64,000 nt of DNA, taken from Paramoeba atlantica. Its lineage: Eukaryota > Protista > Discosea. The notes under the pieces were generated by a model. It did no database searches. It saw only the letters and a list, made by a program, of their open reading frames with translations, and was not told the origin of the DNA. This document shows positions 4,277-55,149 of the stretch, piece after piece. Position numbers and translations under genes: made by a program. Where the stretch lies: positions 310,001 through 374,000 of the forward strand of contig CDRNVI010000054.1 of the NCBI GenBank assembly GCA_977017575.1. The letters run 5' to 3'. The number at the start of each line of letters is the position of its first letter. The first letter of the stretch is position 1.

Positions 4277-5400
4277 TTAAGCCCAAGGTGCTTGATTTCC
4301 CTCTCAAGAACCTCCAGAGCCGCCCCACATACCTTTGGTTCACCCGCGAAGGTGACATCGTCAAGGTAAGCCCATATTTTGAGGGAGCCTGGGAACTTAG
4401 CCGCCACCTTGGCTATGTCCCCTTGGATTCCTATGGCGAATAGGATTGGGGCCATGGGGTCCCCTTGTTTTACCCCCCCTGGAGCTCATTATGGAGATTC
4501 CTTCCCCAAGGTGTAGGGTGCTAGGCTTCCCGTAGCCGAAGAGGTTGATACCTTCAAGGGGGAGTAGCTTGGAGTCTCCCTTTAGGGCCCTGAAGATGGC
4601 CGACCTCGAGATGCTGTTGAAGGCATTCTCGAGGTCGGCTGCCACTGTGACCTCGCCCGGTCTGTCCCTAAAGTGTTGACGAACACTGTAGATTATGTGT
4701 TCGCACCCTTGGGTGTACTGCGCCCCAAATTGAATGCCTTGAAAGTAGGAGGGTAGGTTTTCTCTCACCTTCTCCAGTATTTATTTATATTTCATGCGGG
4801 GCAAAACCTGAAGAGTGAGCGCCTGACGTACGACGACTGTTATCAACGGCCATTACAGCGCATTCAACGCCGGTCGTACGCAGGGATTCGGCCTATGGCC
4901 ACGCCGCGTGGTCCTCCAGGGAGGTCCTGCAGCACATGGGGGGGTGAAGGGGGCACTGGACTTCCACTGCGGGGGGCGTCGTTGAGAGGCTGCAAGAAGC
5001 CTTTCGGCTACGCAGCGTCGTTGAGAGGCTCTCCCTGGCGTCCATCCAGCGGGGGCACTCGGCGCGTCTGACCCGCTGCACGGGTGTGCGAAGCGGCGGC
5101 CCCTCTTCAACGGAAAGAAGAGTTTCCGGCCCTAGCGCCAGTCGGAAACGGACACACATGAAAGGTTAAGAGTATGCCCGTTTCCGGGAAAAGAAAGGAT
5201 GAGCTAGGGAAAATGTACCAACAAGGTACAGAAACTGTATCTTTATCCCGCAACCTTTAGGAAGCATTGGTAAGAGGAATGGTGCCCAACCGGGGCGCCC
5301 GGCTTGGTAAAGAGTTTGAGGGACGCCCCAGTGAGCAGCTCCCTCATGGTGGGAGGTAGGGAGTTGGACATGATCCCATGCATTATTTGTTTTTCTATTC
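4277..5400 (-). pseudogene. CRE/SLACS-clade non-LTR reverse transcriptase fragment, split by the element at 4785-5241
   Basis: IQFG, ADLENAFNSISR, QGDPMAPILF (after a frameshift), AYLDD, LGL. The upstream part (LLTGASLKLFTKPG...FLKVAG) joins ILEKVRENLP across the insert. Confidence 0.8.
4785..5241 (-). mobile_element. 457-bp SINE-like element with SL-exon-like head and HERO-LINE-like tail
   Basis: 5-bp TSD TTTAT (4780-4784, 5242-5246). 5' end GATACAGTTTCTGTACCTTGTTG/GTAC. 3' end ctcttcaggttttgccccgcatgaaatataa resembles the LINE tail at 5847-5876. Confidence 0.8.
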
Positions 5401-5928
5401 TTATTCTCAAAAGACCTAAAAACAGCGGGAACTGTGCACTACAGTGACATGTTTTAGCTTCAGCTCGGACACTATGTTATCAATGAGCGCTTGGTAGCAG
5501 TGCAACCATCGATGATTTCTACTATGTTCCACGTCTACTGTGTCCATCGTGCAAAATGCATACTATATGGAGAAGACACAAACAGATCCTTTCTGTATCA
5601 GCTGAGTCACAGCAGTCTTCCACGTTGAAGGGCAATCGCCTAATTTGAGCACATCATTAAATACTGGTGCCATGTGGGTTTCGAGCTCTCTCACGGAGTA
5701 CAGAGTTACTTTATCATGAAAAGTGATTCCAGCGGTTTAAATTTTCTAAAGGGGGAGTTCGTCTATTATTAACAACCATCTATTAAACCCCTCCGCATCA
5801 AAAAAGGCACCCACCCTTATTTTTCGCACGAGGGGGGCTAGGGGAATTATATCTATACAGGGCATTACCTGTAGAGTAATAAAGTCTAACAGGACGTACG
5901 CATATGACGTCGCCTGCTAGACCATTTG

Positions 5929-8900
5929 CTAACCAAAGCTTTGGTTGTCCCATAAAGGGGATTCCCTTTTCAGCCAGAGTTGAAAGCTGCTCCGGATCGC
6001 CGTTCGGATGACTTCGACACGGCACTTATCTGAGAGTGCCTTGTCACCCAAAAAGAGACGGTTGATGTGACGCAGCGTCGTAGAAGGGAGACCTCTAGCT
6101 CCAACTTCAAAGCATATCAAGTGGCAGTCTGAGTACCTTATTTTTCGTCGGTGTAGAATATTTATGTACTTTTCTACTTTTCGGCAGTGGGCTTCGTGTA
6201 CGTTTTCCTCCCAGGGCATCGTCAACTCAACGATAAATTCAGTTCCGTCGTTGAGTTTGACGATTCCATCTGGGCGAAGCTGTGTTTCCAGGTCGGACCA
6301 CCATGCGGGTAGTTGACGTAGGTGTGGGAGATCAAAATGTGCCTCTGCGGTATGGGGGGAAGAGAGTATCGCGTTTGCAAAGGTGGAGAGTACACTATCA
6401 TGGCGATATGTGCAACGTCCCTGTTCTAGTGATACCTTGCACGAGGATAAGAGGTGTCGTAATGTTTCCGGTTCTTGTTTACAAATTCGGAATTGTACTG
6501 TATCTGTGCCGTGAATTCCCCATGTCCTCAGCATTGTCCTATTAGGGAGAGTGTTTTGTACCATTAAAGAAGTTGCGAAGCGGCTAAGGGAAGTGCTACG
6601 TAATCCGTTTATCGCGGCGCTGAAATCTTTCGCCTGTTCTTCCTCGGAGGTTATATCCCACCACTGAATAGCGAACGTTGACCTGCGGCGTAGTGCGTTG
6701 ATCATTCGGTCCTCATTAAGCTCAAGAAGAGTTCGTTTTGCGAGGTCGCGATCCTCCAGTATGTGTGTGATGTCACATGCTGGTCGAATTTGGCCTTTCC
6801 TGCGCTTATGTTCTTCAGCCCGTATTCTTTCCTGCAGTGCGGCGGTAACGTTCGGGTCTCGGGACCGCTTCATTTGACAGAGAAGATCAGCTGTACAGTC
6901 TTCCCAGAGTCTGGACAAGCTGCAGATGTTCCATCCACGCTGAGAGTAGATTGCTTCGCTGCATGTAGTTCTAGCCGCATTGATCCACCGTTTCAGGGAG
7001 TGAGTACACATTTTCTGAAGGCGTAAAATAAAGTTTAGCGTGATACATGGGTGTATAGTAAAGGTGAAGCGTAGCCGAGAGATGATTGCGTGCTGATATA
7101 TCCAAATTTTTGATGGGAGGTCGTGGGCCGACTGGTCAATGTTATGAAGCCATCGCTTCAATAAGGGCCTAACTTTCGTGAAAAGGGCTCGGGATTGTTG
7201 AGAACCGGGGGCAATATTCATGCCAAGAAACGTACTTCCTTCGTCGCATATATGCGGTATAGCTTCGTTCTTGATGAAAATTTGAGGACGTCGTGTCATG
7301 TAGCCGGGGTGTTCATCATTTTTCTTGGACGCCATATATTGGACTCTGCACTTTTTGACGTTGATGGAAAGGCCAAGCGAACCGAGTACCGTGGATAGTG
7401 TTTCAACAGCCAGTTGCATTTCTTTTTCACTATTCGTCAGGACCGTGAGATCGTCGGCGTACGCTTTTAGGAAGCTTTTTGGAAATCCAGGGAGGTTCAA
7501 TCCAAATGAGGGAAACGATTTTGCCATGTAACGTAGGGCTAGATCCATAATCACCAGAAAGAGCGTAGGAGAGAGAGTGTCACCTTGTAAGACACCTCGT
7601 TTAGCTGGGATCGCGCTGGACAGACCTTCGTAACATTTAATGCGGGTACTTGCGTCAGTGTATAAACATTGGACGTATTTAATAATGTTTGGGGAGATTC
7701 TCGCCCATTCCAGTGCTTCAAAGATGATGTTGCGGGGGACTGAACCAAAGGCGTTACTGAGGTCTAGCTCGGCCATGCAGTAGTTCAACTTGTTCTTCCG
7801 GTAGTGGCGTAGGAGCTCTGAGAGGGATTGCGTATGTTCGAGAGTACCGTTAATGGCGGGGAGAAAGCCTTTCTGTATCTTGGGGTCAATGACAGAGGCT
7901 TCAATTAGGAATTTCGTCATTTTCCGGCTGATGATGGAATGCAGGAGTTTCCCTAGTACGCTAGTCAGGCCGATGGGACGCCAGCTTTGTGGGTTGTCAG
8001 GCTCCCCTTTTTTGTAAATGAGGCGAGTGACGGATATTTTCCACGACGTCGGACATGTGCTGAAGCGCACTAGCGCGTTGAAGACGTTTGCCATGTGGGT
8101 GTGGGAGCTGTGGCATCGCTTTAGAGTCTGGTACGTAATGGAGTCCTGGCCTGGAGCACTGCTGTTTTTCTTTGATGTGAGAGCGTTCGAAATGTCGATT
8201 GAAGCCAGTTCGTCCCAGGTCATTTCTGCCAGAGGACGGATTCCGAGGACGTCGTGGGGTGGTAAGTGATGCACTGTAGTGGGGTCCGTAAGTAATGTTG
8301 TGAACACACTTTCCACTTTCTGTACATTGCAAGTCGGATAGGCCGGTACACTTTCTGCTTCTGTGCTTTTGTCCAAGGTTTGACTCGCAGCCGTCCATGG
8401 ATTGCGGTTGAATTGTTGAAGTGCCCAGCGACTTTCCAGTTCCCGTTTTTGGGCCATGGCTTCTGCGCTGTATATACGTTCCGCCTTTTTGGTTTCCTTA
8501 ATCTTTTGTTTCAACGCCATGCGGGGAGCCTTGCCGTGTGTGTATCGCAGCTTCATTTGTAGTTGTTTTACATGTCGAGAGAAGGAAAAGGCAACTTTTT
8601 CGCTTTCTAATGGACGGACTTTCCCCTTTGTGTGTCCTCGAGCCGTTCGGATAATGAAACCCTTCCTGGAGTCGACGTCTCGCGCCACTTCATATGCCGA
8701 CACCGCTAGTATTGCACTCAGTAGTTCTGCGTTATGGACGGCGGGGAGTGCGTCGCCAGAGACAGTGAGCAAGGTGTTGCATCTGTGGAGGGCCCTACGT
8801 TCCACCTCGTGCCAGTGCGCGTCAGCCAAGTTTATGTTTAACTTGCCCCCCTGGATGTATCGTGCCGTGCGGAAAAGGTACTCCGTCTCGTCGAGTGGTC

Positions 8901-9276
8901 TCGGAGAGGAAGCGGAAGTGGGGGGGTTAAGTTCGGGGTGTTCTTGCTCTTGTCCTGCGTTGGGGCTCCCCTCAGAGTCTCCTTCGATTCCCTGATCGAG
9001 GGATGGTCCATAGATTTTGCAGCATGGATGGCTGCATTTGAGTTGACTTATGCATCGATGTTGGCATGGGTGCGTCCGCTTCAAGGAGGAGGCGTGGTCA
9101 CGCGAAATAATCTCGTATGGTGGAAGTGTTGGGACCGTTTGGGGCTTTGATGGCTGTACTTCTTCTTTGTCGTCGGTGCGAAGGAGCAGAACGATCCGAA
9201 ACGCCGATAACCCAGGGACCGCTCTCCCGTTCAGTACCTTATTTACCGCTTTACCCATTGAGCTAGGTGATGGCGG
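5929..9276 (-). CDS. LINE ORF, 3' part: RT, zinc knuckle and restriction-like endonuclease
   Basis: SAPGQD, WRPIGL, QKGFL..GTLEH, DLSNAFGSV, GVLQGDTLSP, AYADD; xRICKQEPETLRHLLSSC (first Cys is Phe), RHDSVL, RPDG, ELTMPWE, RKVEKY, EVGARG. Confidence 0.95.
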   Translation of the reverse strand, partial: PPSPSSMGKAVNKVLNGRAVPGLSAFRIVLLLRTDDKEEVQPSKPQTVPTLPPYEIISRDHASSLKRTHPCQHRCISQLKCSHPCCKIYGPSLDQGIEGDSEGSPNAGQEQEHPELNPPTSASSPRPLDETEYLFRTARYIQGGKLNINLADAHWHEVERRALHRCNTLLTVSGDALPAVHNAELLSAILAVSAYEVARDVDSRKGFIIRTARGHTKGKVRPLESEKVAFSFSRHVKQLQMKLRYTHGKAPRMALKQKIKETKKAERIYSAEAMAQKRELESRWALQQFNRNPWTAASQTLDKSTEAESVPAYPTCNVQKVESVFTTLLTDPTTVHHLPPHDVLGIRPLAEMTWDELASIDISNALTSKKNSSAPGQDSITYQTLKRCHSSHTHMANVFNALVRFSTCPTSWKISVTRLIYKKGEPDNPQSWRPIGLTSVLGKLLHSIISRKMTKFLIEASVIDPKIQKGFLPAINGTLEHTQSLSELLRHYRKNKLNYCMAELDLSNAFGSVPRNIIFEALEWARISPNIIKYVQCLYTDASTRIKCYEGLSSAIPAKRGVLQGDTLSPTLFLVIMDLALRYMAKSFPSFGLNLPGFPKSFLKAYADDLTVLTNSEKEMQLAVETLSTVLGSLGLSINVKKCRVQYMASKKNDEHPGYMTRRPQIFIKNEAIPHICDEGSTFLGMNIAPGSQQSRALFTKVRPLLKRWLHNIDQSAHDLPSKIWIYQHAIISRLRFTFTIHPCITLNFILRLQKMCTHSLKRWINAARTTCSEAIYSQRGWNICSLSRLWEDCTADLLCQMKRSRDPNVTAALQERIRAEEHKRRKGQIRPACDITHILEDRDLAKRTLLELNEDRMINALRRRSTFAIQWWDITSEEEQAKDFSAAINGLRSTSLSRFATSLMVQNTLPNRTMLRTWGIHGTDTVQFRICKQEPETLRHLLSSCKVSLEQGRCTYRHDSVLSTFANAILSSPHTAEAHFDLPHLRQLPAWWSDLETQLRPDGIVKLNDGTEFIVELTMPWEENVHEAHCRKVEKYINILHRRKIRYSDCHLICFEVGARGLPSTTLRHINRLFLGDKALSDKCRVEVIRTAIRSSFQLWLKRESPLWDNQSFG

Positions 9277-9770
9277 ATTGTCAACACCAACGCACCACTT
9301 TTTTTCCTAAAAAATAATTTTCTTGTCATTTCCAGTGCACCACTTTTTCTTAAAAACTGTATTCTCATTTCCAATGCACCATCAATTATTTAAAGAAGTA
9401 TTATTTTATAATATCCTTCGGATCTACACTACAAATGCGCCATTATTCAAGACTCAGTCATTACGATCGTAATCGTATTCAATCACTCTTTACATCTGGC
9501 GAGAGTCGGCGAAGCATAGCTCGCATAATTGGCAAAAGTCACAGCACTGTTTGTCGCGAGTTGGCGCGTAATGCAAGAAGGGGTCAGCGCTATGAGGGGA
9601 CGAGGGCACAGCGCATTTCGAAAAGACGCCTCTCGTGTAAAAAGGTCAAGCCTCACAAGATACAAGGCCTTTTGGAAGAGGAAGTCAGCTCTCGACTTCA
9701 AAAGAAGCACAGCCCGGAACAGATTGCAAATACGATCCGTAGCTGTCGTACCGCCTCGACTTCTACCATA

Positions 9771-11326
9771 CAGGGGTGCAAATCAGATGCTGGGGGGGTC
9801 TAAAATTAGCAATGTTTGCGCAATTTTGGAAAATAATAGATCATTCGAGAGCTCTCGCAGAGATCTATGTTTTGGCGCTATTATCACGTTAAAAGAAAAC
9901 AAATTTGAAAAAGATATTTTTTTAAAGGTTTTTTACCCCCCTAAAAGTTGCAGATTTTTCAATTTTTGCAGTTTTTTCCGTGTTTTTTTTTGTTTTTCAG
10001 CTCACTATAATGCCGCAAAAGCGATCCCTCTCTAAGCAAAACAGTAAAAGCTTATCTGATAGATCACACGAACCCCGGGGGCACACAAAATATTCACACA
10101 GGATGCTTCTCGTTAAAGATTACGAGAATACAAACTCCTACAATGCCACTTGCCAAAGACAAGGCGTCCACGACAGCACTGTTAAGTTGTGGGTTAAGCG
10201 ATTTGAGGAAACCGGGGATGTTGAACGTGCTACGCCTCCTCGCGAACGCACTGACAACGCCGGAGCTTCTTGAGGCATGCCGCGAAATTATTGACGCGTC
10301 CAACGCGACAAGTGCGCGAGGTTGTCCCTCGTGGAGTTTTATTCTTCGAGAGGTTAGGAAAAGGGGTTTCTCCTGCAGCAGGCCGGCCCTAGTAAATTTT
10401 TTGAAGGACGAAGGGATGATCCAACGATTTTTTTCTAAAGGCCTGTTCTTAACTGAAGTTCACAAGGCCAAGCGACTAACATTTGCACTGAAAATGCAGA
10501 AGTGGTCCGTCGCACAGCTTCGTCACATTATTTGGTGTGACGAAAAAAAGTTTACTTGTCAACTTGGGCGCGAAAGCCGTTCTTACATTTGCCGAGCGAG
10601 TGACCCCCCCAAGCCACCCCTAAAAGCTGCGCAAAAATGGTTTGGGGGGGATGGAGTAAACGTTTGGATGGGTATAAGCCTTATTTATGGAGTTTTTTAT
10701 CACGTCTTTCCCGACAGGGTCAGAAATGGGAAAGTTACAATTACTTCAAATGTTTTTAAAGCAGCTATGACAAAAAGGGGGGGTTTCTTAAGTTACTTGA
10801 AGCGTCATAGCGGTACTAGAGTTGCAATGAATAATGCTCCTTGTCACAATGGCACCTTTAAAACCTTTCGAGAAAACCAAGTCTTTGTTTTAGACTTTCC
10901 CCCAAAATCCCCAGATCTTAACCCTATTGAAAACATTTGGGACATCATGGACACCTTTATTAAAGATGGTACAAACCCAGAAAATAGGACTGAAGTTTTG
11001 TATTCTATTGAAAAGGCGTTTGATTACATTAAAACAGATGGTCATGACATGCTCATAAATACTTTAAACAGCATGCCGCGGCGTTTCGACATAGTAGTAG
11101 AAAAAAAAGGGGAAAGTTGTAATTATTGAACGTACAAAATTTTTCTTTCACTTTTTGCATTTTGACGTTTTTGGGCTTCTCCTCAGTTGACCACCCCCTT
11201 ACACCCCGGGAAACCGCCTATCCAAATACATAGATCTCTGCGAGAGCTCTCGAATGCGCTATTATTTTCCAAAATTGCGCAAACATTGTTAATTTTAGAC
11301 CCCCCAGCATCTGATTTGCACCCCTG
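9771..11326 (+). mobile_element. Tc1/mariner (IS630-like) element nested in IS30
   Basis: About 100-bp TIRs starting CAGGGGTGCAAATCAGATGCTGGGGGG; TA TSD at 9769-9770 and 11327-11328. Confidence 0.93.
10010..11129 (+). pseudogene. Tc1-like transposase with a frameshift near 10245 and second catalytic D apparently changed to N
   Basis: HTH (STVKLWVKRFEETG), IIWCDEKKF, AMNNAPCH, PPKSPDLNPIENIW. A polypyrimidine tract plus AG lies 9 nt before the ATG. Confidence 0.88.
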
Positions 11327-12247
11327 TATATCGCCATATTCGTCGCAACGCGTCCTTAGGCGGCAAGTTGTACACCCATTTGCGGATCCAGCGAAAGAGG
11401 CCATACCGTCGTCGCACCAGACCTGATCGCAGCGCGATTCCCAACCGAACGCCACTTGAAAATCGACCAGAAATTGTTAATAAGCGTCGGCGCTACGGCG
11501 ATTGGGAAGCAGACTTGGTCGAGGGTCGAGGACATACCGGATATATTCTTACCCTGTGCGAGCGTAAGAGTCGCTTCCTTGTTCTTCGCAAGTTGGAATC
11601 TAAGCACGCGAAGGGGGTAAACAAACAAATTGAAGACGGGTTAAAGAATTACAAGGTTCAAACAATCACATACGACAACGGAGCAGACACGGAGGCACCA
11701 TGAAGAAGTAAACAAAAAATTGAAATGCAAGTCTTTCTTTTGCGCTCCGTATCATTCGTGGGAGAAAGGGTCTGTGGAACATGCAAACGGTTTGATCCGA
11801 CAATTCCATCAGAAAACCGAATCTTTTGAGAATTTGAACCAAAGTGAATTAAACAAAACAGCATTGGAATTGAACACTCGTCCTCGGAAATTATTAAATT
11901 ATCGTTCTCCAATGGATTTTGTGAATGAACTGCGTAAGTAAAAGAAGCTAAGTAAGCAAAGGTACGTGAGAAAGCTTGTAAAGTTAGCCTGCTAGTGTTG
12001 GAAATTTAATGACAATAAATTTAAGCATTTTGTAAAGGTGAAGAAATTCTTGTCTAATAAAGTTTCTTACTCAGATCTTACACTTGTATTACGCTTTCTT
12101 TAAATACTCTGGATAAGTTTTTATGTTGAAAGGAAAAAGGAACGATGTTCAACTATGGTGAGGCGCAGAAAAAGGGAATGACGGTCGACTATGGTGAAAA
12201 AAGTGGTGCGCTGGAGTTGACAATGGGGTGGTGCACTGGAGTTGAAC

Positions 12248-13498
12248 ATCCGGGGATGCGTAGTGGTTGTATAATTCCAGGCGGCTGTCGTGAAAAAGAG
12301 ATACCCAGTTCGCGTGGCGAGAAATGTGACTTGTTGAGTCTACTCTACTAACTTCTAAAAAGTCACACGCTCTCTTTTCCATAAGTTCGTCTACGGTACA
12401 CGTTTCTACGACGATGTCGTGTGCTGCACTTTTCCCATTGAGCGCTTTGGACAGGGCGGCTTCAGCCCCCTGGGGGGAAGGGATACGACTACGCACAAGT
12501 TGGCTTACGCAAGCTGCATGCACATCCGGGAAATATCTCCATGTGTTGTCGTTGACGAGGTGGAGTTTGACAGGTTTTGACCGGGACTGGATAAAGTGGA
12601 AACGTTGCTTGTGTCGGTTATGGGTTACGGGATGCGTGGGGTCCTGGGGCGGCGGGAGATACTGTGACGGGCTGTCGGGAGTTTGTGTGGGAATCTTGGT
12701 ACCCTCGGATTCATCCGAATGTAAATGGGTGTCCAGTTGTGATGGGGGTAAGAGGCTTCCTTGTTCAAGCGGCGGGCTTTGTATTCGCCCTACGCTGTGC
12801 GCTTGTTGGAAAACCCAGGATGGGACTTCGTCATCGCCATTCTCATTCCGCGGACTGTGTTGGTGTGCTGTGGAAGATGAGTCCAAGAGAATGATACTTT
12901 CCGGTGCCTTGTTTTTGGGAGTCGGGATGGCTGGTTCCCTGGCAACGGCACGGTCAGCTGTCGTAGTGGTTGTGTTTAGGGACGGTGTGACGAAATTCTT
13001 GGGAAGGGTACATGGGCCGGTGGGTAGAGTATTCTGCCCATCCAGTTTGCTTATCGGTGTGTCAAGCGAAGTCAACGGTGTGCCAGTGCGTTTGCAGCAA
13101 GGATGGCCGCACCCTGCTTTGTTCTTACATTTATGTTTACAGGGCTCGACACGGTCTGCTTGTTCGGAAGCGGGGCCTAGGCCTTGCTTGCAGCACACGT
13201 GCTTATATTGATCTTTACTCTTGCAGATATGCTTGCATACTCTAGTTAAGGCGTGGACCTGAAGTTGTGTTGGAGATTTAGGTTTGGGGAGGCTTTGGGA
13301 GTCCGGAGTTTTATTAATTTCCGGAGTTTGATATGGAACGCCGTTGAAAAGTAGGAATTTGGCAAGCGAGCAGGCAGTTGATGCGACGGCACCACCGACG
13401 GTAACAGTGGGTGATTTTTGATGGGGAGTAACCTCCTTGGGTGGGGGTACATGTAAATCGTGTTCGTCTTTTGGACAGGGTGCTATTGTGTACGACAA
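12248..13498 (-). CDS. LINE ORF, 5' part (continuous with 5929-9276 once IS30 is removed)
   Basis: The join reads HYASPD-PPSPSSMGKAVNK in frame. Contains CxHxCx5CxHxCCK motifs. Confidence 0.85.
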
Positions 13499-14163
13499 GC
13501 GTTCCTGTCCGGTGCTGCTGTGAGGTCGTACGGTTACCGCCGGGGTTGAGGGAGTGCCGTTAGATTACGTTTGCAACATGGGTGCCCGCAGGTCTGTTTG
13601 TTTTTACAGACATGCTTACAGGGTGTGCTACGTTGTACCGGCATTACACTCACAGCCGTGATCACCTTTACGTCTTCTCTTGCATCCACCGGTGCGTCAC
13701 ATCACTTATTGTTGTACGTATCCGGTTTTGCTACGCGTACCAGGTGTCGTTTGCAGCATGGGTGTTCACAGTGAGCTTTGTCCTTGCAGCGGTGTTTGCA
13801 TTCCGGAACCGTTTGTTGTGTGGTTGGGGGGACGGGGTGAGGGGGAAGTTCGTTTGTGTGAGGAGTGACCAGGATATGTGGCCGCGTTACACCCCGCTTG
13901 CAACAGGGGTGTCCGCAGGTGCTTTTGTCCTTACAAGGATGTTTGCATGGAGCTGGGGGTACTTCTCCTGTGTCGCTGGTAAGGGACTCATTGCTCTTTT
14001 GGGATATGAGAGCCTGGACGGTTCGGGTAGCAGATTTTGCAACCCTGTCTGTGAGAGTGCCTTTCAGGGACAGGTTTTTGTTTTGGTTAGACACGTCGCG
14101 TGGTCTCTTAGGAGAGTCCTGCGACGCCTGGTGTGTGCCCTTCCCTAGTAGTAAGCAAAACAT
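13499..14163 (-). pseudogene. LINE ORF extreme N-terminus with three Cys/His repeats; in-frame TGA (13702-13704) and a frameshift near 13550
   Basis: ATG 35 nt after the SL-like head; CKHPCKDKSTCGHPCCKR, CKHRCKDKAHCEHPCCKR, CKHVCKNKQTCGHPCCKR. Confidence 0.75.
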
Positions 14164-14608
14164 GTCGTTGTAAAGGGTAGGGAAAAGAAAAAAAAGTCAA
14201 CAAGGTACAGAAACGTTATCGCACCACTTTATCGTGCAAAATTTTGAGATCTGTACGTTCCCGTTGTCTTTAGGTCATTTCGAAAAATATAAAAAAGTTG
14301 AATGTATTTTTTAAAAAAAATCACTTTTCATGCCAACAAATACGTATCGACTCCCCAGGGGTGGTCTTACAGAAAGTGGAAAAGTGTTATGGCGCATGAG
14401 GCTTGGCCACGGGGTTGCGATAAGGTAACTAGCCCGCGGGTTTAATGTCAATGTGAAACATATTGGAAAATATTTGAAAAACAATTCGCCTGAAATTCTT
14501 TACACTCTGAGCCCTGAAGTAAAAAAAGAATCCAAAGACACTTTGTTATTCTTCCATCCAACTCAATTACATGTGTTTCGTACATTAAAACATTAAAAAA
14601 AGTACCAT

Positions 14609-17546: not shown

Positions 17547-17688
17547 CACACAAAGAAGAACATAAGGTTTACAACCTGAAGGCACATTTCGGTACTGATT
17601 CTACCTTGTATTAGCCCTATTTTTGAACCGAATAAGACAAATGTACGATCTCTGTAAAGTATGATCTCTGTAAAGTATGATCTATGTA

Positions 17689-18756
17689 CAGGGGGTGGCA
17701 CGGAAATATGGGGGGGTCAAAATTTTTACAACTTGTCCAATTTTGGAAAGTAGCACCGCATTCGAGAGCTCTCGCAGAGATACGTTCACCTGCTATTGCG
17801 TTTCCCGTGTTTTTAATTTTTTTAATTTTGGACAAAAAAATACATTAAAATATACGTCAATATTTTATGTATTTTCCCTCTATTTTTTGACCTTTCCGCC
17901 GCGTTATGCCACATAAAAGGGCTTATTCCAATACAAGGGTGTACAGCACCGTGATCGTCATTGTTACAGTCCTCGTGTACAGCTTATAGTCACCCACCGC
18001 ATACTTTTAGTAAAGAAGTATGAAGAAACTGGGTCAAAAATAATTTATGCCCACAAAAGCTCATTATGCCCCACAAATCGGTCAGAATTGCGATCGACGA
18101 TCGCATCTGGGATTGAATTGTTGAAAGGAGAACAGAACAAAACATTTTTACACACTTCAAAAACTGTTCCACCTCATATTAAGATTACATTACAAAAAAA
18201 TGGAGATCATTGTGGATATTAAATGACATACTGTACCCCCCCCTGTTTATAATAGCCTCGACCCCTCCCCCCCTTTATAGGTTCTTTTTTTGGCAAACTG
18301 GGGAAGATTTTTTTTAATTTTCTTGCACTGTCTTAAATATTTTGATATTTATTTTCATATAGTTCTTCGAGGTATGGTGCGTGTTCGTGCTGGACATTTT
18401 ACTTTGGAAGAGCGCCGGGGCCCACTTAGCGATTGAATAGTTCCTGGTTCCTCGCTCCCAAATGTAGGGCGATTTCTGTGCCAACTCTTAATCTTCAATC
18501 GCCCTCCCCCCTTTATAGGTTCATTTGGGCAAAAGCGAGGCTATTATAAACCGGGGGGGTACAGTATTTTTCAAAATTCGAAACTTGCAATTCCTGTTTT
18601 CAGCCCCTTTGGCATAGGGACCTACCCCCCTGGATACGGGAAACGCAATATCAGGTGACACGTATCTCTGCGAGAGCTCTCGAATGCGGTGCTACTTTCC
18701 AAATTGGACAAGTTATAAAAATTTTGACCCCCCTCATATTTTCGTGTCACCCCCTG
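17689..18756. mobile_element. Non-autonomous Tc1-type element
   Basis: About 105-bp TIRs starting CAGGGGGTGGCACG with the inner CGAGAGCTCTCG palindrome; TA TSD. Confidence 0.85.
18231..18564. mobile_element. MITE (TIR CTGTACCCCCC, TA TSD) nested in 17689-18756; right half repeated at 28180-28316
   Basis: Inverted termini seen directly; near-identical sequence at 28180-28316. Confidence 0.75.
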
Positions 18757-18859
18757 TATGAGAAGAGTGGCGTATATAATACAACATATAGCATCGTGAT
18801 ATTTTACTTTTAAACCAGAATTAGGTTATTTACGAAAAGGTTGCTGCGCAACTTTGTTT

Positions 18860-22137: not shown

Positions 22138-22661
22138 GGTTTTTTTGATTAAGTATGGGGTGCGTTCGGAGACGCACATCAGGCGAAACATGGATTTTCG
22201 TACAGTACTACATCTTCTATTAGAGGGGTGAATCGGGTTCGGTGCGGTCGGGCGCGTCCGGGTGCGGTCGGGTGCGGCTCAAATTAAAAATGCAGTGCCC
22301 CGAAAAAGATCACTCCTAGATATTCAGGAGTTTAGCAATTTTATACACCCTCTTATCATTTTCAGAATTTTGAGATGTACACGTTCCAGTTACTTTTAGT
22401 AAAATGAAATTTTGATGAAATGCAGTCGAAAAGTATCTTAAAAAAATTAGCAGGGGTCCGAATAACTATAAAACTATATTATAGGTACTTTAAAGTAAGT
22501 ATATTTATTTTTCCCTACCATTATCTACCTTTATTTTTTTTGTCAATGATTTGCACTGGAATCGTACTGTTTCGTTGAAATTTTTCAATGCCTTGACGCT
22601 CGGATTGTAATACAGAAAGTCGAGCTAAATTTGTCCAGTCTTATTAGTAATAAGTTTTTTA

Positions 22662-22756
22662 GTCTCTTCGTTAAACGCGGTAGTTGTTTTCAACTTAGAA
22701 GTCATTCATGCCGCGCGCTTCGCGTTGAAAACTGCCACCGTGTTTAGCGAAGAGCC
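22662..22756. repeat. 95-bp palindromic MITE-like repeat; also at 26422-26516 and 46364-46458
   Basis: GGCTCTTCGTTAAACGCGG...CCGCGTTTAACGAAGAGCC with TA flanks; three copies. Confidence 0.8.
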
Positions 22757-23016
22757 TAAAAGGAAAGCTGAAGAAAACGGAAAGATTGGCCGGGAAAGCT
22801 GAAGAAAACGGAAAGATTGTAGCCAAAAATAGCCGATTTTCAGGTAAAAATAGGGACATTTTCGGGTTTTTTTGCTCTCAGAGCACTAAATCCGACATTT
22901 GGATGTGGGAAATCACTAGTAGGGGTGAAGCAAAGCCTACCTAACATATTGGGTAAAGAATACGACTCCAAGCACACCATTCTTTCGACACAAAAAGGCC
23001 TCTTTGGGTCCGAAAA

Positions 23017-23086
23017 ATGATGATTCTATGTGTACGACGGTCTTCTGATACGATCTTGATCTCCAAAACACAAAAAACAGGACTGA
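23017..23086 (+). ncRNA. Probable box C/D snoRNA (copy 2)
   Basis: Identical to copy 1 from C box to D' box. The 3' half has diverged but keeps a C'-like TTGAT and the terminal D box at the same spacing. Confidence 0.6.
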
Positions 23087-24412
23087 TTCTTGTGTACAAC
23101 AATATCTAATATTGTTCTTTTTACAGTGCGTGGCTTTATTACGGGACGGGTTAATTAAGGGACACCCCCATCAGGACAAAGTGTCCCGTAATTAACCGTC
23201 CCTTAATTCTCCATTTTGCTTTCTAAGGCTCTACTATACCTTTTTTTCAATTATCTTCCTTTATTAATTTCCTTTCCGTTCACTGATCCTACAGATACAT
23301 TTTTATGTGTGCCTGATAACTTGCGCGCTCTGTTCCTTGGGCGCTACACTTGTAGTTCTTTTGTCCCATTCGAAAGGTATGACCCCACCCCTATAAACCC
23401 CTCGACACGAATAAAGCACCCCCCTTTATTTTTTGCGTGCGGGGACCCATGGGGGTTGCAGCACCACTTTGTCGTCCACAATTTTGAGATCTGCACGTTC
23501 CCGGGGTTTTTAGCTTCATTTAAAACTTGTAAAAAAATCAGTTTCAGAAATATTTTTTTTCTAAACTTTCATGGTAAAATCCAAGTACCGTCCCCCAAAG
23601 GGGGGATGACCCCTATAGGTAAGACATTATTGCGCCTGAGGTTCGAGGACGGTGTCCCAAAGAAGCAACTTGCACGATAATTTAATATTTCTGTAAAATA
23701 TGTGAGGCAATATCTGAAAGCATAAGAAACCAATAAAACCAAAATATTTACACCGAAAAAAAATATTTTACGTCGCAGAAAAAAAATAGTAACCATTATT
23801 TCACCAAAAGACCTTGCTGGAGTGCCGAAAGCAGCGCTAGATGCATTGCGGGGAGATTGAGGGAGTTGCTATGCCCTGTCCATGGTATCATGTTCAGGGG
23901 AACAGCAACTCCCCATTATCTCGGCGTAGTAAACACGCCTTGGCTTGCCTGGCACTACGATTGCCGAAAAAAAAATATTTTCGGTTCATTTCGCAGCCCA
24001 GTCGCTTCCCACTTAAGGGGCCCGCTCCCACAACCGAGTGATCTCCCCGGCAGCATGGTTTTACTCATGCGTCGAGAAGGCTGGGGTGTGAGACCAGGGT
24101 GCATTTGTAGAAAATTTTCGGAAGAAGAAATACGAAGGAGATTTTACTGCATAATGGAGTAGAAAACTTTGAGTGCAATAGAACAAAGGGTTGGCGTAAA
24201 CCTTTGGTTAACGTTTTTTCTTTTGGAGTGGATTTACTTTCTTTGCCATTCCTCATGCTATCCACTCATAAATTTTACTAATTACTCTAGATTCGTGTGT
24301 TTGTTTCATCCAGTTACGCTTTCTATAATTCTTACATAGGGTCTACATGTACATCGCCAGCTCTTAGAGCTGAGTTCAGGAGTGCTTCTTTTATGTCATA
24401 ATTATGCTCTTC

Positions 24413-26341: not shown

Positions 26342-27299
26342 GAGTGATAATGAGTAAAAAGGGGGTACATGTCACAAAACGCACTGTTCAACGTGACTTA
26401 AAAGCAATGAAATTCTTTTTAGGCTCTTCTTTAAACGCGGTGGTTGTTTTCAACTTAGAAGTCACTCAATCTGCGCGCTTCGAGTTGAAAACTACCGCCG
26501 CGTTTAACGAAGAGCCTAAAAAGAAAATTTAGCCTGGAAAACGGAAAGATTATAGGCAAAAATAGCCGAATTTCGGGTAAAAATGGGGTGATTTTCAGGT
26601 ATTTTTGCTCTCAGAGCACTAAATCCGACATTTGCGCGTGGGAAATCACTCGTAGGCATGAATGGAAGCCTACCGAACGTATTGGGTAGAGAATGCGACT
26701 CCAACCATACCATTCTTTCGACACAAAAATGCCCCTTTAGGTCCGAAAAATCCTTTTTCATCTTTTTTAGTCAAAAATGGGTCATTTTGAGGTGCGCACC
26801 ACCGTTAGAAGAAGTGATACCTTGCGAAAACAACTGCGGAGAAAGCTAGTGTAGGTCCCAAACTATCAAAATACAATAGGGGAAACGATTTTGGAAAAAT
26901 ATTTTTTTTGCCATTTTTTTCGCCAAGTTGAAATTTTTTTCAAAAAAAAATCCGAGCTTGGCGGACCCGTCCTGCGGATACGCGGAGGGGTCACCCCCGG
27001 GTAGGGGGGTGGAAAATGCGCGCCAAGACCCCGGCTACCCTTTCTGCGTTTTTCTTTCGAAAACTAATTTTTTCGAAAAAATTTGCTCGACCATGCCCCC
27101 CCCCTGGACCCCCCCCCCTGGACCCCCCCCCATGGACCCCCCATTTTTTTCAATTTTTTTTTTCAGTTTTGGACCACCGGAGCCCCCTTTTATATTTTTT
27201 TCTTCTATTATATTACTGTGTTCCTCTTTATATTTTCACTGTTTTTGTTCACTTTTTTTTCAATAATCGAGTGTAGAGCGGTAGTTTTACAACCACCGC

Positions 27300-27670
27300 A
27301 ATATACTTACAGTAGTGTTCAGCCTCTTTTACCCCCCCCCCACCTACAGGTCTTGCATTTTGTTCGATTTTGGAAATATTTTGGATGGGACTGTTTTTCG
27401 ACCCAATCGTTCCGAATCCGAGGTCCTTTTCACTCGTGGGCACCTGTATCATACGTAAACTGGGGAAAAACCGCAAAAAAGTCGATTTTTGTTGTAATTA
27501 GCTTTTTTGACCCCTACCTGGATAGGGGGGGTAGGGGGTCGCTCGAGTGAAAAGGGCCTCGGATTCGGAAGGATTGGGTCGAAAAACGGTGGTATACCAA
27601 ATATTTCCAAAATCGGACAAAATACAAGACCTGTAAGGGGGAGGGGTAAAAGATGCTGATCACCACTGCA
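27300..27670. mobile_element. Foldback/MITE with ~140-bp imperfect inverted arms
   Basis: 27315-27435 is the reverse complement of about 27543-27660. Confidence 0.7.
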
Positions 27671-41299: not shown

Positions 41300-42132
41300 A
41301 ATGATGTAATTACCGCGTAATGCCCTGTGCACCATTGATTCTCGACACCCGCTCGTCGAGCTCTTGCTGCCTGAGAAAAGGAGATTAGCTGGCGGGTTGT
41401 GTGATACAAGCTTCCCCGGGCTCCTGCTCAAAGAACAGGAGCAGCGTATTTTTGTGAGTTCAAGTTTCGTGTGCGCCAGTTTCACAGGTCCACCGAGCAG
41501 GTCTGAGGTCTGGAGGACCGACCCGGAACCTCCCGCAGGGCATCAGCTCCCGTACCCGGCGTGGTCGTTAAACACGTCGTTGCCTCCTTGAACAAGCGGA
41601 AACTGGTAGAGGCGTTCGGATCTCGCACCCCCGATCGTCAGTGAGGGTCCTGGCTTGATAATCATGCGCCTGTTATTGTGCAGAGACAATATCCTTACTA
41701 CAACACCCGATATGGTTGGCACATAATCCGTCCACAGCGAATGTCGCTAACGAGGGTTTAGCACGGACTCTGTCGGTACAGGGATCCAACTCGTCTCTCT
41801 TTACGCAGCAGTAGGGGTGCACTGCAAACGACCGCTGCTTCGGTGTAAGACAAGACAAAACGACGCCCAATGTTCTTCCGGGGAGGCCATCATCGTGCAT
41901 GGCTCCCCGGAAAGCGCGAGACACAGAGGGTCGGGAAGGGAAGAAAACTCACTCAAGGAGTGAGCTGGGGACGGATGAAGAGTCAAAAATACGTCCCCTA
42001 CTTCCACGACAAAGAGGGACAGTTCCCACTAGCCGTCAACGGGAAACGGGCATGAAAGAGAAAATGTATGCCTGTTTCTAGCATAAGAAAAGAAGGGCTA
42101 GCAAGTCTGTACCAAGGTACAGAAACTGTATC
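41300..42132 (-). mobile_element. SL-headed element (copy B); 3' end not determined
   Basis: Head GATACAGTTTCTGTACCTTG/GTACAG at 42113-42132. About 480 nt are homologous to 48845-49321; the downstream body is homologous to 53040-53400. Confidence 0.7.
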
Positions 42133-42366
42133 TGTATGACATCTCACTCATGTCTTCCCACTTCTCTGCGTAAAATGATCACCAACTGTTTCACTCAATT
42201 CGCGCCATACTTTGTTCTGATATTACTTGCATTCCCCAAGCTTGCATGGGCAAAATTTTGTTTATTTATGTTACTGTAGTAGTCGTATCCTCTACTGTAG
42301 TTTTCCTACGTTTATAAACTTTCATAATCAAAGTTTAACTAAATTAAAGTTACTTTTGCTCATCAA

Positions 42367-45904: not shown

Positions 45905-47012
45905 TTTATGGCGGGATACCCGTGTACTTCCTTTTAGTAAAAGGAAAACGGGTAAAATTTTACCCGTTTACAGTCCAGAGCGTGGACTACGAATTCTTTA
46001 TTTGGGAAAGAGATCCCGCACACGCATTGTACCGTTGGGCAAGACAAAAAAACGTACATACTGTAGGCCCGAACCGATACTTGCATTCAAAGTAACATGC
46101 ATTGCTCTTCTACATAAGTTAATCAACAAAACAAATTTGAAGGGCCTTATCATGATATGCGACCTAATAACATAAATCTAATAATATAAATTAGACCTTA
46201 TCATAATTTTTCTGCTGAACGGTCGTGCCCTCGAGCCGAACTCTTCGGGCTCTAAAGTTTAATAGTTTATAACATATCAATCCTATGGATACCAAGATTC
46301 CGTTGCAGTTTTCCGACTAATGACCGGAGTATCACTGGGCAAGAGGTTAATATTTCTTTTTTAGGCTCTTCGTTAAACGTGGTGGTTGTTTTAAACTTAG
46401 AAGTCACTCATGCTGCGCGCTTCGCGTTGAAAACTACCACCGCGTTTAACGAAGAGCCTAAAAACAAAAAATCGCCAAAAGATCATCAATAATCTATTTT
46501 TCTCCGTGAAAAAGCGCGATTTTTCGGCAAAAATTGCGAAATTTTAACCCAAATTTGGGCCGCTTTTGATGCCTGACCAGTAGGCTTAGGAAACGAATTT
46601 GCCGAAAAAAACGTTGTAGAAAGGTAGCTGAGGTCTAAAACTCTTAAAATACGTTTTAGGACACGATTTTGGAAAAGTAATATTTTTACTTTTTTTTGGG
46701 TCAATTTTTTTTTTTGGTCACCCCAAATTTTTGGGGTGACCCCCCCATGGACCCCCCCTAGGGGTCCTTTTTTTCAATTTTTTTCTTCTTTTTTGGACCA
46801 CCGGAGCCCCCTTTTATATTTTTTTCTTCTATTATATTACTGTGTTTCTCTTTATATTTTCACTGTTTTTATTCACTTTTTTTGCAATAATCGAGGGTAG
46901 AGCGGTAGTTATACAACCACCGCAATAAAATTTATAAGTTATTTACGATGTGCAATGCACAGTCGTCTCCAGTAGCTTGTTGCACGCAATCAACATGTGA
47001 CCTGTGGTCAAT

Positions 47013-49321
47013 ATATGATTTCATACAGGGCGATTACCTGTAGAGATTAAGGGATATGGTTTTCTTCGGAAAGCACGTGCAAGCCATATCCTGTTGAACC
47101 GAATTACGTTGTTTCTTCCCAAGCATTTGACGCCCTTTTTATCCGAATCATAAAACTTCCTCTCACTGCTTTTTGTATCATATTTTCGAGACAGGAGAAA
47201 GCGAGTGATTTATCACCATTATAAAGGTGGTAGAGGTCCCGGCTGAATGGGTTTGGGAGACCGCGAGCGCCGATTTCAATCACGATCAGATAACAGTTAG
47301 GATGCACCTGACGTCGGCGATGTAGAATGTTGCAATATTTTTGTCTTTTGCGGCTCTGCGCAGCATCCATAGCTTCTTCCGTGTGTGAGCATTTCCGCGT
47401 AGGTCGAAATGATGCGTAAAGGCGTGAGGGGATTCCGCTACGAACTTGCGTAATTGTGTTAGGACTAGATCGTGCCGGCACGTACATGTATATCGCCCTT
47501 GCGCTAGAGCAACGCTACAGCCTGACAGTATACAGGGGGGGTCACGAAAAGAGTGGGGGGTCTAAAATTTGTACCGTGCGAGCTTTTGACCTAATTCCTT
47601 CGGCACTCAACAGATCTCGAAATTTTAAGACTACAAATTTTCAATTAAATTTAAATCCGGCGACTTGGCAGGCCAATCAGGAATGCTGATACCCATGTCT
47701 CTGCCGACGCGGCGAGCGTGATTATGGCCCGGAGCGTTATCCATGATCACTGTTGCCGCTGGTTTACGCTTTAACTAGTTGTAGAAACCATTTCGTTTTG
47801 TCATGGCAGAGAGAAACGTTTCATTAGTGACCGTCTCATTCTCCGCAAGCTCATGAAAACAGTGAACCTTGGGAACCCCCCATTCAAGGCTCACCGCCAT
47901 CCAAATATGAACTCCCTTTCCTCCGAAATATTTCTCAACATCTTTTGGTACCTCAAGGGGTTCATCTGACCTTTTGCAAATGTACCAAATATTGCGTGAG
48001 TGGTACCCGCATTTAAAATTCTTTTCATTCGTCCACAGAATACGGGCGTATTGAAAAGGGGTGAACCTCTCCAAACGATTTGCCAACTCCAGGCGGTCGA
48101 ATTTGTGCTGAGGCGTGAGATGAGGAACTTTCCTCATTTTTCTGCTTATGTACCCGCTCCTTTTCAGTGATCTTTTCACAGAGGAAAGAGAGCATGGGTA
48201 CTTGGTTTGATCGATCTGGCGGTGACCCCACCTCCAAGATGGACAGCCAATGGGACTACGTTGATTTTCTTCATCTACAATAGATTCTAACATTATTCGA
48301 AACTCTTCATTATCAATCGCATTCTTACGTATGTATTTTATACGTTCTAACCCTCCTGTCTCCCGGTGGCGTTTAACCTATCGAGAGACAGTTGCTTCAC
48401 TGCATTTCATAAGAGCAGCAGTGTCTGTAATCGAACGTCCCTGGTTTTGTACCTCATGGACGCAAATTACACGTGTTTCATAAGTGATTTGTTGCGTCGA
48501 GAGGGTGCGCCTCTGGCGGCGAAGTGTTTTCGGCATAAAAGATGTGTTAGAAAGAGTTAAGTGGTATTTTATTCATAGATTAATGGGCTAAAATGATAAA
48601 AAATGATAAAAATCCGATTTTTTGCAGAATTTTCAGGTAAAAAGTTCAGTAAAATTTTATCATGACGTCATATCAGCTTCAGGGGCGGCAACAATGGTGC
48701 CAGTAGTCTTAAAATTTCGAGATCTGTTGAGTGCCGAAGGAATTAGGTCAAAAGCTCGCACGGTACAAATTTTAGACCCCCCACCTTTTTCGTGACCCCC
48801 CCTGTATGGCGTGTAGTTTCCGTTGCCTCGTGGCAAAGGGAGCTTTGATGTTCATGCGCTCGTTGGCGCAGAGATACAGCCCTTGATGCGACGGCCGATA
48901 TCATCGGCACAATCCGTAATGACGGATGTCGCACCAAGGGGGTTTAGCACGGACTCTGTCGGTAGAGGGGGTCCAGGCAACTCGCCCTCTCTTTACGCAG
49001 CCGGAGGGGCGCACTGCAACCGACCGCTGCCTCGTGATAAGACGAGGCAGAGTCACGCCCAGTGGTCCTCAAGGGAGGCCACCATGGCGCATGGCTCCCC
49101 GGGAAGGAAAGGGCGCGAAAGGAAGAAAGCCGGGGAGGGAAGAAAACTCACTCAAGGAGTGAGCCGGGGAGGGGTGATGGGGTGGAAGCGCGTCCCCTAC
49201 TTCGCCGAGAAAGAGGGACAGTTTCGGCCTTAGTGCCGGCCGGCAACGGGCATATTAACAGTAAGACTATGCCCGTTGCCGGGGAAAGAAAAGATGAACA
49301 ATAAGGTACAGAAACTGTATC
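47013..49321 (-). mobile_element. SL-headed non-autonomous HERO derivative (copy C, about 1.03 kb) split by Tc1
   Basis: Head at 49299-49321. Tc1 removal restores SSLCHEATETTRHILSGCSVALAQGRY...RHDLVL. IEIGARG follows, then the tail ctctacaggtaatcgccctgtatgaaat. Confidence 0.85.
47533..48804 (-). mobile_element. Tc1/mariner element with degenerate transposase (ATG at 48536)
   Basis: About 100-bp TIRs CAGGGGGGGTCACGAAAA; TA TSD; GCPSW, WTNEKNF, YFGGKGVHIW, IMDNAPGH; homologous to 10010-11129. Confidence 0.9.
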
Positions 49322-54146: not shown

Positions 54147-54263
54147 AGATATCATTGTTTGGCGCTGCTGCACTGGTACGTAAGCGGTCTTAGAGAATGA
54201 CATGTTCGGAGTTTGAGACTGGTCGACCCTTTCAGGTTGCGTCAAGCGATCAGGTGATACATA

Positions 54264-55007
54264 CAGGGGTGTAAATTTGGATGTGGGGGGGGGTCTAAAA
54301 TTTGTAAAAATTAACCAATTTTGGAAAATAATAGCGCATTCGAGAGCTCCCGAACAGGGCTCATTAACGTAACAAGGCCGAACTATGCACAAGGGGGTAT
54401 TGCCCCCTAGACAAAGCGCCCCCAAAAGCTATTTGCAACTTTCTAAAACAATAGCAAATATCGAAAAAAAAAATTAATAATTGCTATTATCGTCGATTAA
54501 TCCCAATCACAATACAGCATCCCTTTCGAAAGCTCTTCATGGCATTTTCATGGGCCTTGAAACCCTGCTTCGATCGCAATGATCAAATCTGCACTATTCC
54601 GAGGGGCTCAACCATTTTTGGAGTCGCCCACTATGGAACATGATTTTTTAGCGCGAAATAGATTGTGTTGTTTCGTAATCAGCAACAAGAACCATGCACC
54701 AGCTTGCTTTTACGTGCCCAGGCGAAGAATAAACCCTTTCGTAGTCTTTGCGTTCGGGTGATGGCCCACAACCCCATCTTTGTAGCATTAATCAGGGGAG
54801 AAATCAGAAAAACTGTCAAAAATGCAAAATTTTACCTCCCAAAAAACTAATTTTTTTTACGTGCACTCGAAATTCTAATTAACGCAGATGCCGTACATGC
54901 ACGTTCATGAGCCCAGTTCGAGAGCTCTCGAATGCGCTATAATTTTCCAAAATTGGCCAAGTTTTACAAACTTTAGACCCCGCCCCACATCCAAATTTAC
55001 ACCCCTG
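54264..55007. mobile_element. Non-autonomous Tc1-type element
   Basis: About 95-bp TIRs CAGGGGTGTAAATTTGGATGTGGGG; TA TSD. Confidence 0.85.
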
Positions 55008-55149
55008 TATGTCAGGGGTGTGACTTCAACGAGATTGCTCCCCTTAGGTAAGATAATGTCAACGTGTTGCCCCCTCCGACCATGTCGCGTCGTTTCGGCG
55101 AGCACAGAGTTTACTCCCTCTGATGACCACCTGTGTTGTGCTTTCCCGA

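Follow-up and report, generated by a model that had tools for sequence, protein, structure and literature searches.

In kinetoplastids, every mRNA is capped through the spliced leader (SL), and the textbook retroposons of these organisms either avoid the leader, as L1Tc/ingi (reported to be unspliced) do, or attack its genes, as CRE and SLACS do. Relics of a leader within retroposed DNA are known from dinoflagellates, whose retrogenes carry relict SLs and are regarded as processed cDNAs that have been 'recycled' (reviewed in PMC6050394 after Slamovits and Keeling 2008; also PMC5585692). Here we describe a stretch of 64,000 nucleotides filed under Paramoeba atlantica (assembly GCA_977017575.1, contig CDRNVI010000054.1, positions 310,001 to 374,000; hereafter the window), where four retroelement copies on the minus strand carry an SL relic at their 5' end, including a long interspersed nuclear element (LINE) headed by the relic at 14198-14214. 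Judging from the junctions, these heads are very probably the SL exon of the organism itself copied into DNA, left by element RNAs that would have been trans-spliced, reverse-transcribed and integrated.

As in the dinoflagellate relics, a genomic SL is found directly upstream of retroposed sequence and tandem relics record repeated rounds, and re-splicing at an AG inside the relic is a further likeness (PMC6050394). Unlike in dinoflagellates, the host is of the kinetoplastid type and the leader, of 38 nt, is usually 5'-truncated to an extent that depends on the family; the carriers, rather than ordinary retrogenes, are R2-like LINEs, a family resembling short interspersed nuclear elements (SINEs), and other retroelements. 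A literature search for SL-headed retrotransposons in kinetoplastids returned only the dinoflagellate relics, the LINEs specific for SL genes and the work on Pr77, the 5' module of L1Tc discussed below, and a search of the published literature for this particular SL sequence gave no match.

Genome-wide searches covered the whole assembly (45.7 Mb, 248 contigs), where the native SL RNA genes lie on contigs C11, C3 and C24 as tandem copies with the same upstream region, the same exon and the same intron start. Their 38-nt exon, AACTTTAACGATAAAGATACAGTTTCTGTACCTTGTTG, is followed by the intron start GTATGAGAAGC; the intron stretch after the exon in these genes, GTATGAGAAGCTTCG, is the classical kinetoplastid SL intron start, and the stem-loops of the SL RNA fold far more strongly than shuffled sequences (z -5.1). 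The SL base numbers used throughout assume the usual AAC start of the leader, rather than mapped transcription starts. The sequence-only reading of this window had recognised the heads as SL sequence from their likeness to the Trypanosoma cruzi exon, and the tandem genes bear this out, since the head is the exact 3' end (bases 16-38) of the organism's own SL. Two relics, at 5219-5247 and 14198-14214, agree with the native SL at every base, and those at 49299-49321 and 42113-42137 have one change each. Across the genome, the core CAGTTTCTGTAC has 846 matches, versus nine for its reversed control, and a longer 25-mer of the leader is present in 473 copies.

The repeat units that hold SL RNA genes (L004, at G000:C11:1-9000, and L051) include antisense fragments of the SINE, and the SL genes within them are paired, ~297 nt apart. 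The SL RNA has also left retro-pseudogenes of its own: one of them (L006, at G000:C6:26500-27700) begins with SL base 3, still has the intron as far as the last stem-loop, ends in an A-run and is devoid of the upstream region of the SL gene, and two shortened ones (L029 and L050) end in GTATGAGAAGCT plus an A-run.

Allowing up to two mismatches, the 20-mer core of the motif, GATACAGTTTCTGTACCTTG, is found on the minus strand of the window at 5222-5241, 14201-14220, 42113-42132 and 49302-49321, with 0 matches expected from 100 shuffles. The four sites noticed from the sequence alone are real, and comparison confirms that their upstream flanks are unrelated, as are the flanks of about 45 SINE copies and 11 sibling LINE copies. 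The GTAC following the motif in two copies (5218-5215 and 42112-42109) and the claim that the 3' flanks are not SL also stand, no SL sequence having been found in those flanks. What has to be given up is the picture of a single LINE family whose four members begin at exactly the same base: the set comprises one LINE (the copy starting at 14214) and three copies of a non-coding SINE-like family of ~480-580 bp, and the first base that they share with the native SL is base 10 (5247), 11 (42137), 16 (49321) or 22 (14214). The copy placed before at 5241 extends upstream by GATAAA to 5247, and that at 42132 by ATACA, with one mismatch, to 42137.

The evidence that carries our reading lies in the junctions. 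All sampled heads end in ...CCTTGTTG and then pass, at the exon's last base, into sequence specific to the family, which is ACTTTTTT.. in the LINE and GTAC.. in the SINE; GTATGAGAAGC after the exon is confined to true SL genes and pseudogenes of the SL RNA, and is absent from element heads. At 13 genomic sites, a full SL end is joined to a relic beginning right after that relic's own CAG, and at two further tandem sites the second relic begins right after the AAAG of the relic (control 0 in both cases). Additionally, 19 copies have the SL joined inside the element after ...CATTTTCCCTTTAG, a pyrimidine tract plus AG of the kind that a trans-splice acceptor should have. These 15 tandem sites and 19 alternative junctions are genome-wide counts, among which the locus inspected individually is the 49321 copy: its relic runs into TTCATC, which lies 17 nt within the usual element, right after the pyrimidine tract and AG, and the copy shows 95-98% identity to two others (L073 and L074) from element position 46 onward. 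The join at the exon end, the lack of intron, the tandem relics cut at AG and the pyrimidine-AG junctions together point to trans-spliced RNA as the source. The RNA of a retroelement would thus be trans-spliced like a host mRNA, and then reverse-transcribed and integrated with the leader at its 5' end; the captured relic would travel with the element in later rounds and, occasionally, be renewed through trans-splicing of a transcript that bears it, either at AGs within the relic or at an internal pyrimidine-AG site. Several unrelated retroelement families carry the leader, with ~850 SL cores genome-wide.

An alternative already raised by the sequence-only reading is template switching, where the reverse transcriptase (RT) would jump from the 5' end of the element RNA onto the SL RNA or onto a free SL exon. 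R2-type enzymes are known for end-to-end template jumps, and the stuttered leaders and short flank duplications at some 5' junctions (L022, L045 and L059) suggest that jumping takes place here. However, a jump onto the SL RNA would bring the intron, which is never present, and the join falls at the last base of the exon in every family; moreover, junctions such as the 49321 one, after a pyrimidine tract and AG, and the tandem cuts after AG are hallmarks of splicing, which leaves template switching a very slim chance as the origin of the heads. Host small-RNA sequence fused 5' of retroposed sequence is also seen in the U6/L1 chimeras (bioRxiv 10.1101/2025.02.02.635956), where the whole small RNA is joined to variably truncated partners, unlike here, where the exon alone is found and the join is at the splice site. 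As a separate observation, six SINE 5' junctions (L022, L034, L045, L049, L055 and L059) show either 10-17 nt of the flank repeated in tandem (e.g., two successive CATGGACTGTA) or, in L022 and L045, repeated partial leaders, which looks like template jumping at the RNA 5' end during integration.

The heads could also be target-site duplications, or remnants of SL genes hit by CRE/SLACS/NeSL-like elements. CRE1/CRE2, SLACS and CZAR in trypanosomatids, and NeSL-1 in nematodes, split the SL RNA genes at one set base, with SL gene sequence on either side of the element, and the CRE-type elements of trypanosomatids use a site at base 11/12, close to base 11, where SINE relics most often start. The LINE of the window resembles these elements in its R2-like layout with a C-terminal endonuclease, as in the CRE and NeSL clades, in its association with the SL and in its trans-splicing host. 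Contrary to them, its insertions are dispersed among unrelated flanks, and the leader forms the element's own 5' end and passes into element sequence where the exon stops; the upstream flanks contain neither SL bases 1-10 nor the upstream region of the SL gene, the 3' flanks are SL-free, and what is seen is neither insertion at a fixed base of an SL gene nor SL on both flanks. The apparent position of a LINE beside the leader at 5247 is accidental, since the LINE ends at 5845.

The flagged copy itself also speaks against SL-gene targeting, as it is inserted in an unrelated repeat, here called repeat X, with an intact empty site elsewhere. Twenty-one uninterrupted copies of repeat X read AAGTGGTGCGATAAC and then CCCCC across the insertion point, and in contigs from three public DNA runs position 14215 adjoins the sequence beyond the LINE 3' end with nothing in between. 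The insertion is clean, with no target duplication, and starts at 14214 with GTTTCTG (SL base 22). Given the intact copies of repeat X and the empty-site contigs, the GATAAC preceding the relic is target DNA, and the two 'mismatches' formerly counted in the flagged copy arise because its first six motif letters belong to repeat X. The earlier statement that these elements are not inserted in SL genes is therefore sustained, and its alternative, a relic of SL-gene targeting, is refuted for the copies examined and practically negligible as a general explanation. Repeat X is found at 14215-14420, 5780-5844 and 23461-23660, and has at least 37 copies genome-wide. The features of the flagged copy and of the three SINE-like copies are collected in Table 1.

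Table 1. Leader-headed elements of the window and associated features (SL, spliced leader; ORF, open reading frame; RT, reverse transcriptase).
Feature	Coordinates	Strand	Details
SINE 5' fragment, ~160 nt	5090..5247	-	Relic 5219-5247 (SL bases 10-38), then GTAC
Old diverged SINE copy	41653..42137	-	Relic 42113-42137 (SL bases 11-35, one mismatch, 3 bases lost before GTAC)
SINE copy with alternative junction	48844..49321	-	Relic 49299-49321 (SL bases 16-38, one G>A)
SL relic heading the LINE	14198..14214	-	SL bases 22-38, GTTTCTGTACCTTGTTG, exact match to the native SL exon
GATAAC, target DNA of repeat X, outside the element	14215..14220	-	Intact repeat copies; alignment with the 23461-23660 copy
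R2-like LINE copy inside repeat X	5845..14214	-	5' region and 3' end defined by siblings
LINE first ORF region	12149..14163	-	Pieces 14163-13702 and 13498-12149
ORF2, 1109 aa	5929..9258	-	RT at aa 416-648, zf-RVT, C-terminal region aligned to the R2 endonuclease
Tc1/mariner-like DNA transposon nested in the LINE	9768..11329	+	Inverted ends of ~108 bp
Repeat X continuing on the LINE 3' side	5780..5844	-	Target site without duplication

The LINE has siblings of ~5.6 kb, whereas the flagged copy holds ~2.9 kb of foreign DNA between its two open reading frames (ORFs); the inverted repeat of the transposon nested in it (9768-9875 / 11329-11222) is 95% identical, and the ORF at 10143-11129 contains the DDE_3 and HTH_Tnp_Tc3_2 domains. 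A Pfam search of the two pieces of the first ORF returned no family. In ORF2, Pfam recognises RVT_1 (9e-30) and zf-RVT, with no Exo_endo_phos or apurinic/apyrimidinic (AP) endonuclease, and R2 proteins come out as its best relatives of solved structure, chain 9nl2_A aligning over aa 355-1056 of 1109. This order, an RT followed by a C-terminal zinc-knuckle/endonuclease region with no N-terminal AP endonuclease, is that of the R2 superfamily, so that the LINE protein is R2-like by its domains and its C-terminal endonuclease region is predicted, with the catalytic residues read by eye only. As to the HERO-type placement proposed by the sequence-only reading, two results serve as leads only: the nearest named Atlas clusters to ORF2 are chordate RVT_1 proteins, and there are no trypanosomatid proteins among its best 120 matches.

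Twelve LINE siblings, with 98-99% identity, share the 5' region. Each copy is cut at a different SL base, from about 14/15 to ~30, with unrelated DNA upstream, and the join between leader and body varies slightly in the length of its T-run and in short CTTGTTG repeats. All copies end in ...ATAGATATAATT, followed by unrelated, SL-free 3' flanks. Insertion of the LINE into the leader at 5247 was considered and rejected, as the siblings put the LINE end at 5845, and 5844-5248 consists of repeat X and a degenerate RT-like fragment. The degenerate RT-like fragments there, at 5590-5705 and 5290-5340 on the minus strand, show 46% identity over 39 aa to aa 378-416 of ORF2.

The other three leader-headed copies belong to a family that, by self-comparison and from other genomic loci, measures ~480-580 bp and has neither a long ORF nor poly(A), its common 3' ends being ...GCGCATGATAAACAA or ...GCGCATGAACATCAAA. 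Short, non-coding, present in many dispersed copies and with defined ends, it has the attributes of a SINE. The old copy at 41653..42137 retains 72-80% identity to other SINE copies over ~480 nt, and exact heads of the form TTTCTGTACCTTGTTGGTAC number 144 genome-wide. No tRNA-derived head was found by ARAGORN, and there is no similarity between the SINE and the 3' end of the LINE of this window, which is the only LINE compared. A SINE body derived from the SL RNA was also rejected: against the SL RNA intron it scores 15-17, with a shuffle mean of ~14 and 61-178 of 500 shuffles scoring as well.

The point at which the leader is truncated is family-specific. Relics in 44 unique sampled SINE heads start at base 11 in 19 cases and at bases 10-13 in 34; the remaining starts are one each at bases 1, 8, 15, 20, 21, 22, 24 and 27, and two at base 14. 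Likewise, 38 of the 144 exact SINE heads read ATAAAG preceded by a base other than G. Other retroelement families carry the leader from bases 1-4, followed by 28-63 nt of untranslated region (UTR) and an ATG. The fixed boundary suggested by the sequence-only reading is thereby lost, since boundaries vary genome-wide and the modal start of the SINE is a base other than the one it named. With regard to copy numbers, contig C45 (L077, L096 and L109) repeats this part of C54 at ~99% identity with the same insertions, and the C4 and C9 loci share several identical insertion sites; these repeats are haplotigs or large recent duplications, so that raw copy counts are inflated.

How the relics are maintained is a separate matter. 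One possibility is that a fresh leader is acquired in every cycle by SL-less masters with an AG acceptor, the truncation representing a stop of the RT or of 5' joining, with a block near base 10 in the SINE. The relic does stay identical to the native SL across subfamilies, one SINE (L038) bears a full-length leader, and family-specific stops could reflect different enzymes. Nevertheless, we consider this course improbable, because the first 21 nt of one SINE subfamily have 57 exact matches, of which all 32 that were checked are SL-headed, as are all 12 LINE siblings, and because a general block at base 10 is unlikely when other families have been copied to bases 1-4. Inheritance of the relic after capture, with renewal now and then by trans-splicing at relic AGs or at an internal pyrimidine-AG, is on balance the likelier course, since an AG acceptor is missing between SL and body in all copies; with no junction AG and no leader-less source copy, the same join cannot be remade by splicing from these copies.

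Some results weigh against trans-spliced RNA as the origin of the heads. The same two absences count here: the SL/body junction, which reads TTG followed by GTAC or by ACTTTT, is without an AG in all copies, and an SL-less source copy was not found among the SINE and LINE copies just mentioned. The sole candidate RNA run gave nothing on the window, the other runs behaving as DNA. The head samples were taken by exact-match patterns, so that deeply truncated or mutated heads are under-counted. Finally, trans-splicing offers no explanation for the sharp mode of the SINE at SL base 11.

This last point leads to the question of whether the relic is a functional part of the SINE. The L1Tc/ingi and NARTc/RIME retroposons share a 77-nt 5' module, Pr77, described in PMC1874656, PMC3185411 and PMC8190864 as an internal promoter and a ribozyme like that of hepatitis delta virus (HDV); L1Tc RNAs are reported in PMC3185411 and PMC1874656 to lack the SL, and the HDV-like ribozyme is presented, in PMC3185411, as the 5'-end solution of both R2 and L1Tc. 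In a parallel to the elements here, these kinetoplastid retroposons, both the LINEs and the short non-coding ones, rely on a conserved 5' module for a defined 5' end within polycistronic units. Unlike in them, the 5' module here is the leader itself, and neither Pr77 nor an HDV-like fold was detected. The two LINEs also differ in their enzymes: the endonuclease of L1Tc is of the AP type, and the LINE here is R2-like.

The SINE relic, from about base 11 on, might be selected and inherited as one portion of a folded RNA domain at the 5' end, setting the RNA 5' end or mimicking SL stem-loop I, although we regard this as doubtful. For the dinoflagellate relics, too, a later benefit to expression is a matter of debate (PMC6050394). 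The relic is the same in SINE subfamilies that diverge from one another by 13-28% elsewhere and strongly within the 28 nt that follow it; its modal start is at base 11, the stuttered partial leaders in L022 begin at base 11/12 too, and there is no AG at the junction between leader and body. Bases 27-32 of the relic form pairs with the GGTACA immediately after it, a fold also present in the true SL RNA and in agreement with the earlier claim that the GTAC folds back as in stem-loop I: it can pair with UGUACC, much as it does there. A conserved GRRACTGT ~100 nt downstream is the complement of relic bases 19-26, a pairing kept in 254 of 263 cells, versus 63-120 when slid, the sole variation being A/G opposite U; and an adjacent hairpin shows a real compensatory change from A-T to C-G (19 vs 11 sequences). 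As RNAalifold on 34 SINE heads yielded short invariant helices only, owing to alignment gaps, hand-placed pairs were counted by script instead.

On the other side, the pairing of bases 19-26 was derived from the same sequences in which it was counted and its relic side is invariant, so that it does not amount to true covariation. No known ribozyme or RNA family in Rfam matches the SINE head, the SINE body is unrelated to the SL RNA intron, one SINE copy has the whole leader and another starts at base 8, and the LINE family shows no boundary at base 11. An HDV-like ribozyme as the cause of this boundary was tried by hand threading and is not supported: strands that could serve as P2, P3 and P4 follow one another correctly, but P1 would be limited to 4-6 A/U pairs, a long helix-forming stretch occupies the place where P3 should run into P1, and there is no Rfam match. 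We take these data as a hint that the SINE RNA may begin near base 11 and that its relic may be part of a functional 5' domain. A more specific version, where the relic would fix the RNA 5' end within polycistronic transcripts by internal initiation or self-processing, as a leader-derived counterpart of Pr77, is an equally tentative suggestion. The proposal of a captured SL-derived 5' module thus survives only in a weakened form, for the SINE, on account of its invariant relic, its base-11 mode and the missing junction AG. Nothing shows the head donating in trans-splicing or recruiting it, as had been supposed.

Other leader-bearing loci have layouts of their own. Three elements (L002, L003 and L007, on G000:C1 and C6) carry a complete leader and have A-runs before the element, and their first ORF (MV.TRSKAK...) contains an LsmAD domain of the ataxin-2/PBP1 type (Pfam 1.3e-7), which is unusual in the first ORF of a retroelement. 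At L001 (G000:C1:9000-18999), in a 5,093-bp tandem array, the leader stands between two copies of the same ~34-nt 5' UTR segment, and L008 repeats this leader layout with another family.

The window itself is kinetoplastid-like, with genes without introns (Obg GTPase, class-I aldolase) mostly on the plus strand and CT-rich tracts before them, and all four leader-headed elements are antisense to the surrounding plus-strand gene cluster. The aldolase at 58150-59325 is 99% identical to a fragment filed under 'Paramoeba atlantica' in the MMETSP0151 transcriptome, and its nearest named relatives, at 54-55% identity, are Perkinsela (55%), Trypanosoma and Diplonema; by these matches, that transcriptome probably contains this kinetoplastid-type organism. 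The window also harbours Tc1/mariner-like transposons and shorter derivatives (9768-11329, 47530-48807, 17687-18758 and 54259-55012) with inverted ends of ~105-120 bp and a shared end motif, CGAGAGCTCTCGAATGCGC, two of them with DDE_3-type transposase ORFs. A 336-aa ORF on the minus strand (825-1835) has an ISXO2/IS1595-like DDE transposase domain (Pfam 4e-10), which makes it a candidate Merlin-type DNA transposon. A further repeat family (22655-23018, 26413-27303 and 46344-46940), unrelated to the SINE and to the flagged LINE, ends in a near-perfect palindrome of ~120 nt (TTTTAGGCTCTTCGTTAAACGCGG...).

Leader relics as tags of retroposition are known from dinoflagellates, the only source for which the literature searched describes such a record; here they head mobile elements in a kinetoplastid-type host, and our tests contribute the empty site of the flagged copy, a family-by-family distribution of the start bases and two types of junction produced by re-splicing. 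For annotators, the ~850 leader cores are a warning, as they should not be taken for SL genes. For the biology of these elements, hundreds of retroelement copies with the leader in their DNA represent a built-in tag of RNA processing like that of host mRNAs, which allows rounds of retroposition to be counted and full-length copies to be spotted, and the family-specific truncation, above all the base 11 of the SINE, provides a handle on how element RNAs get their 5' ends.
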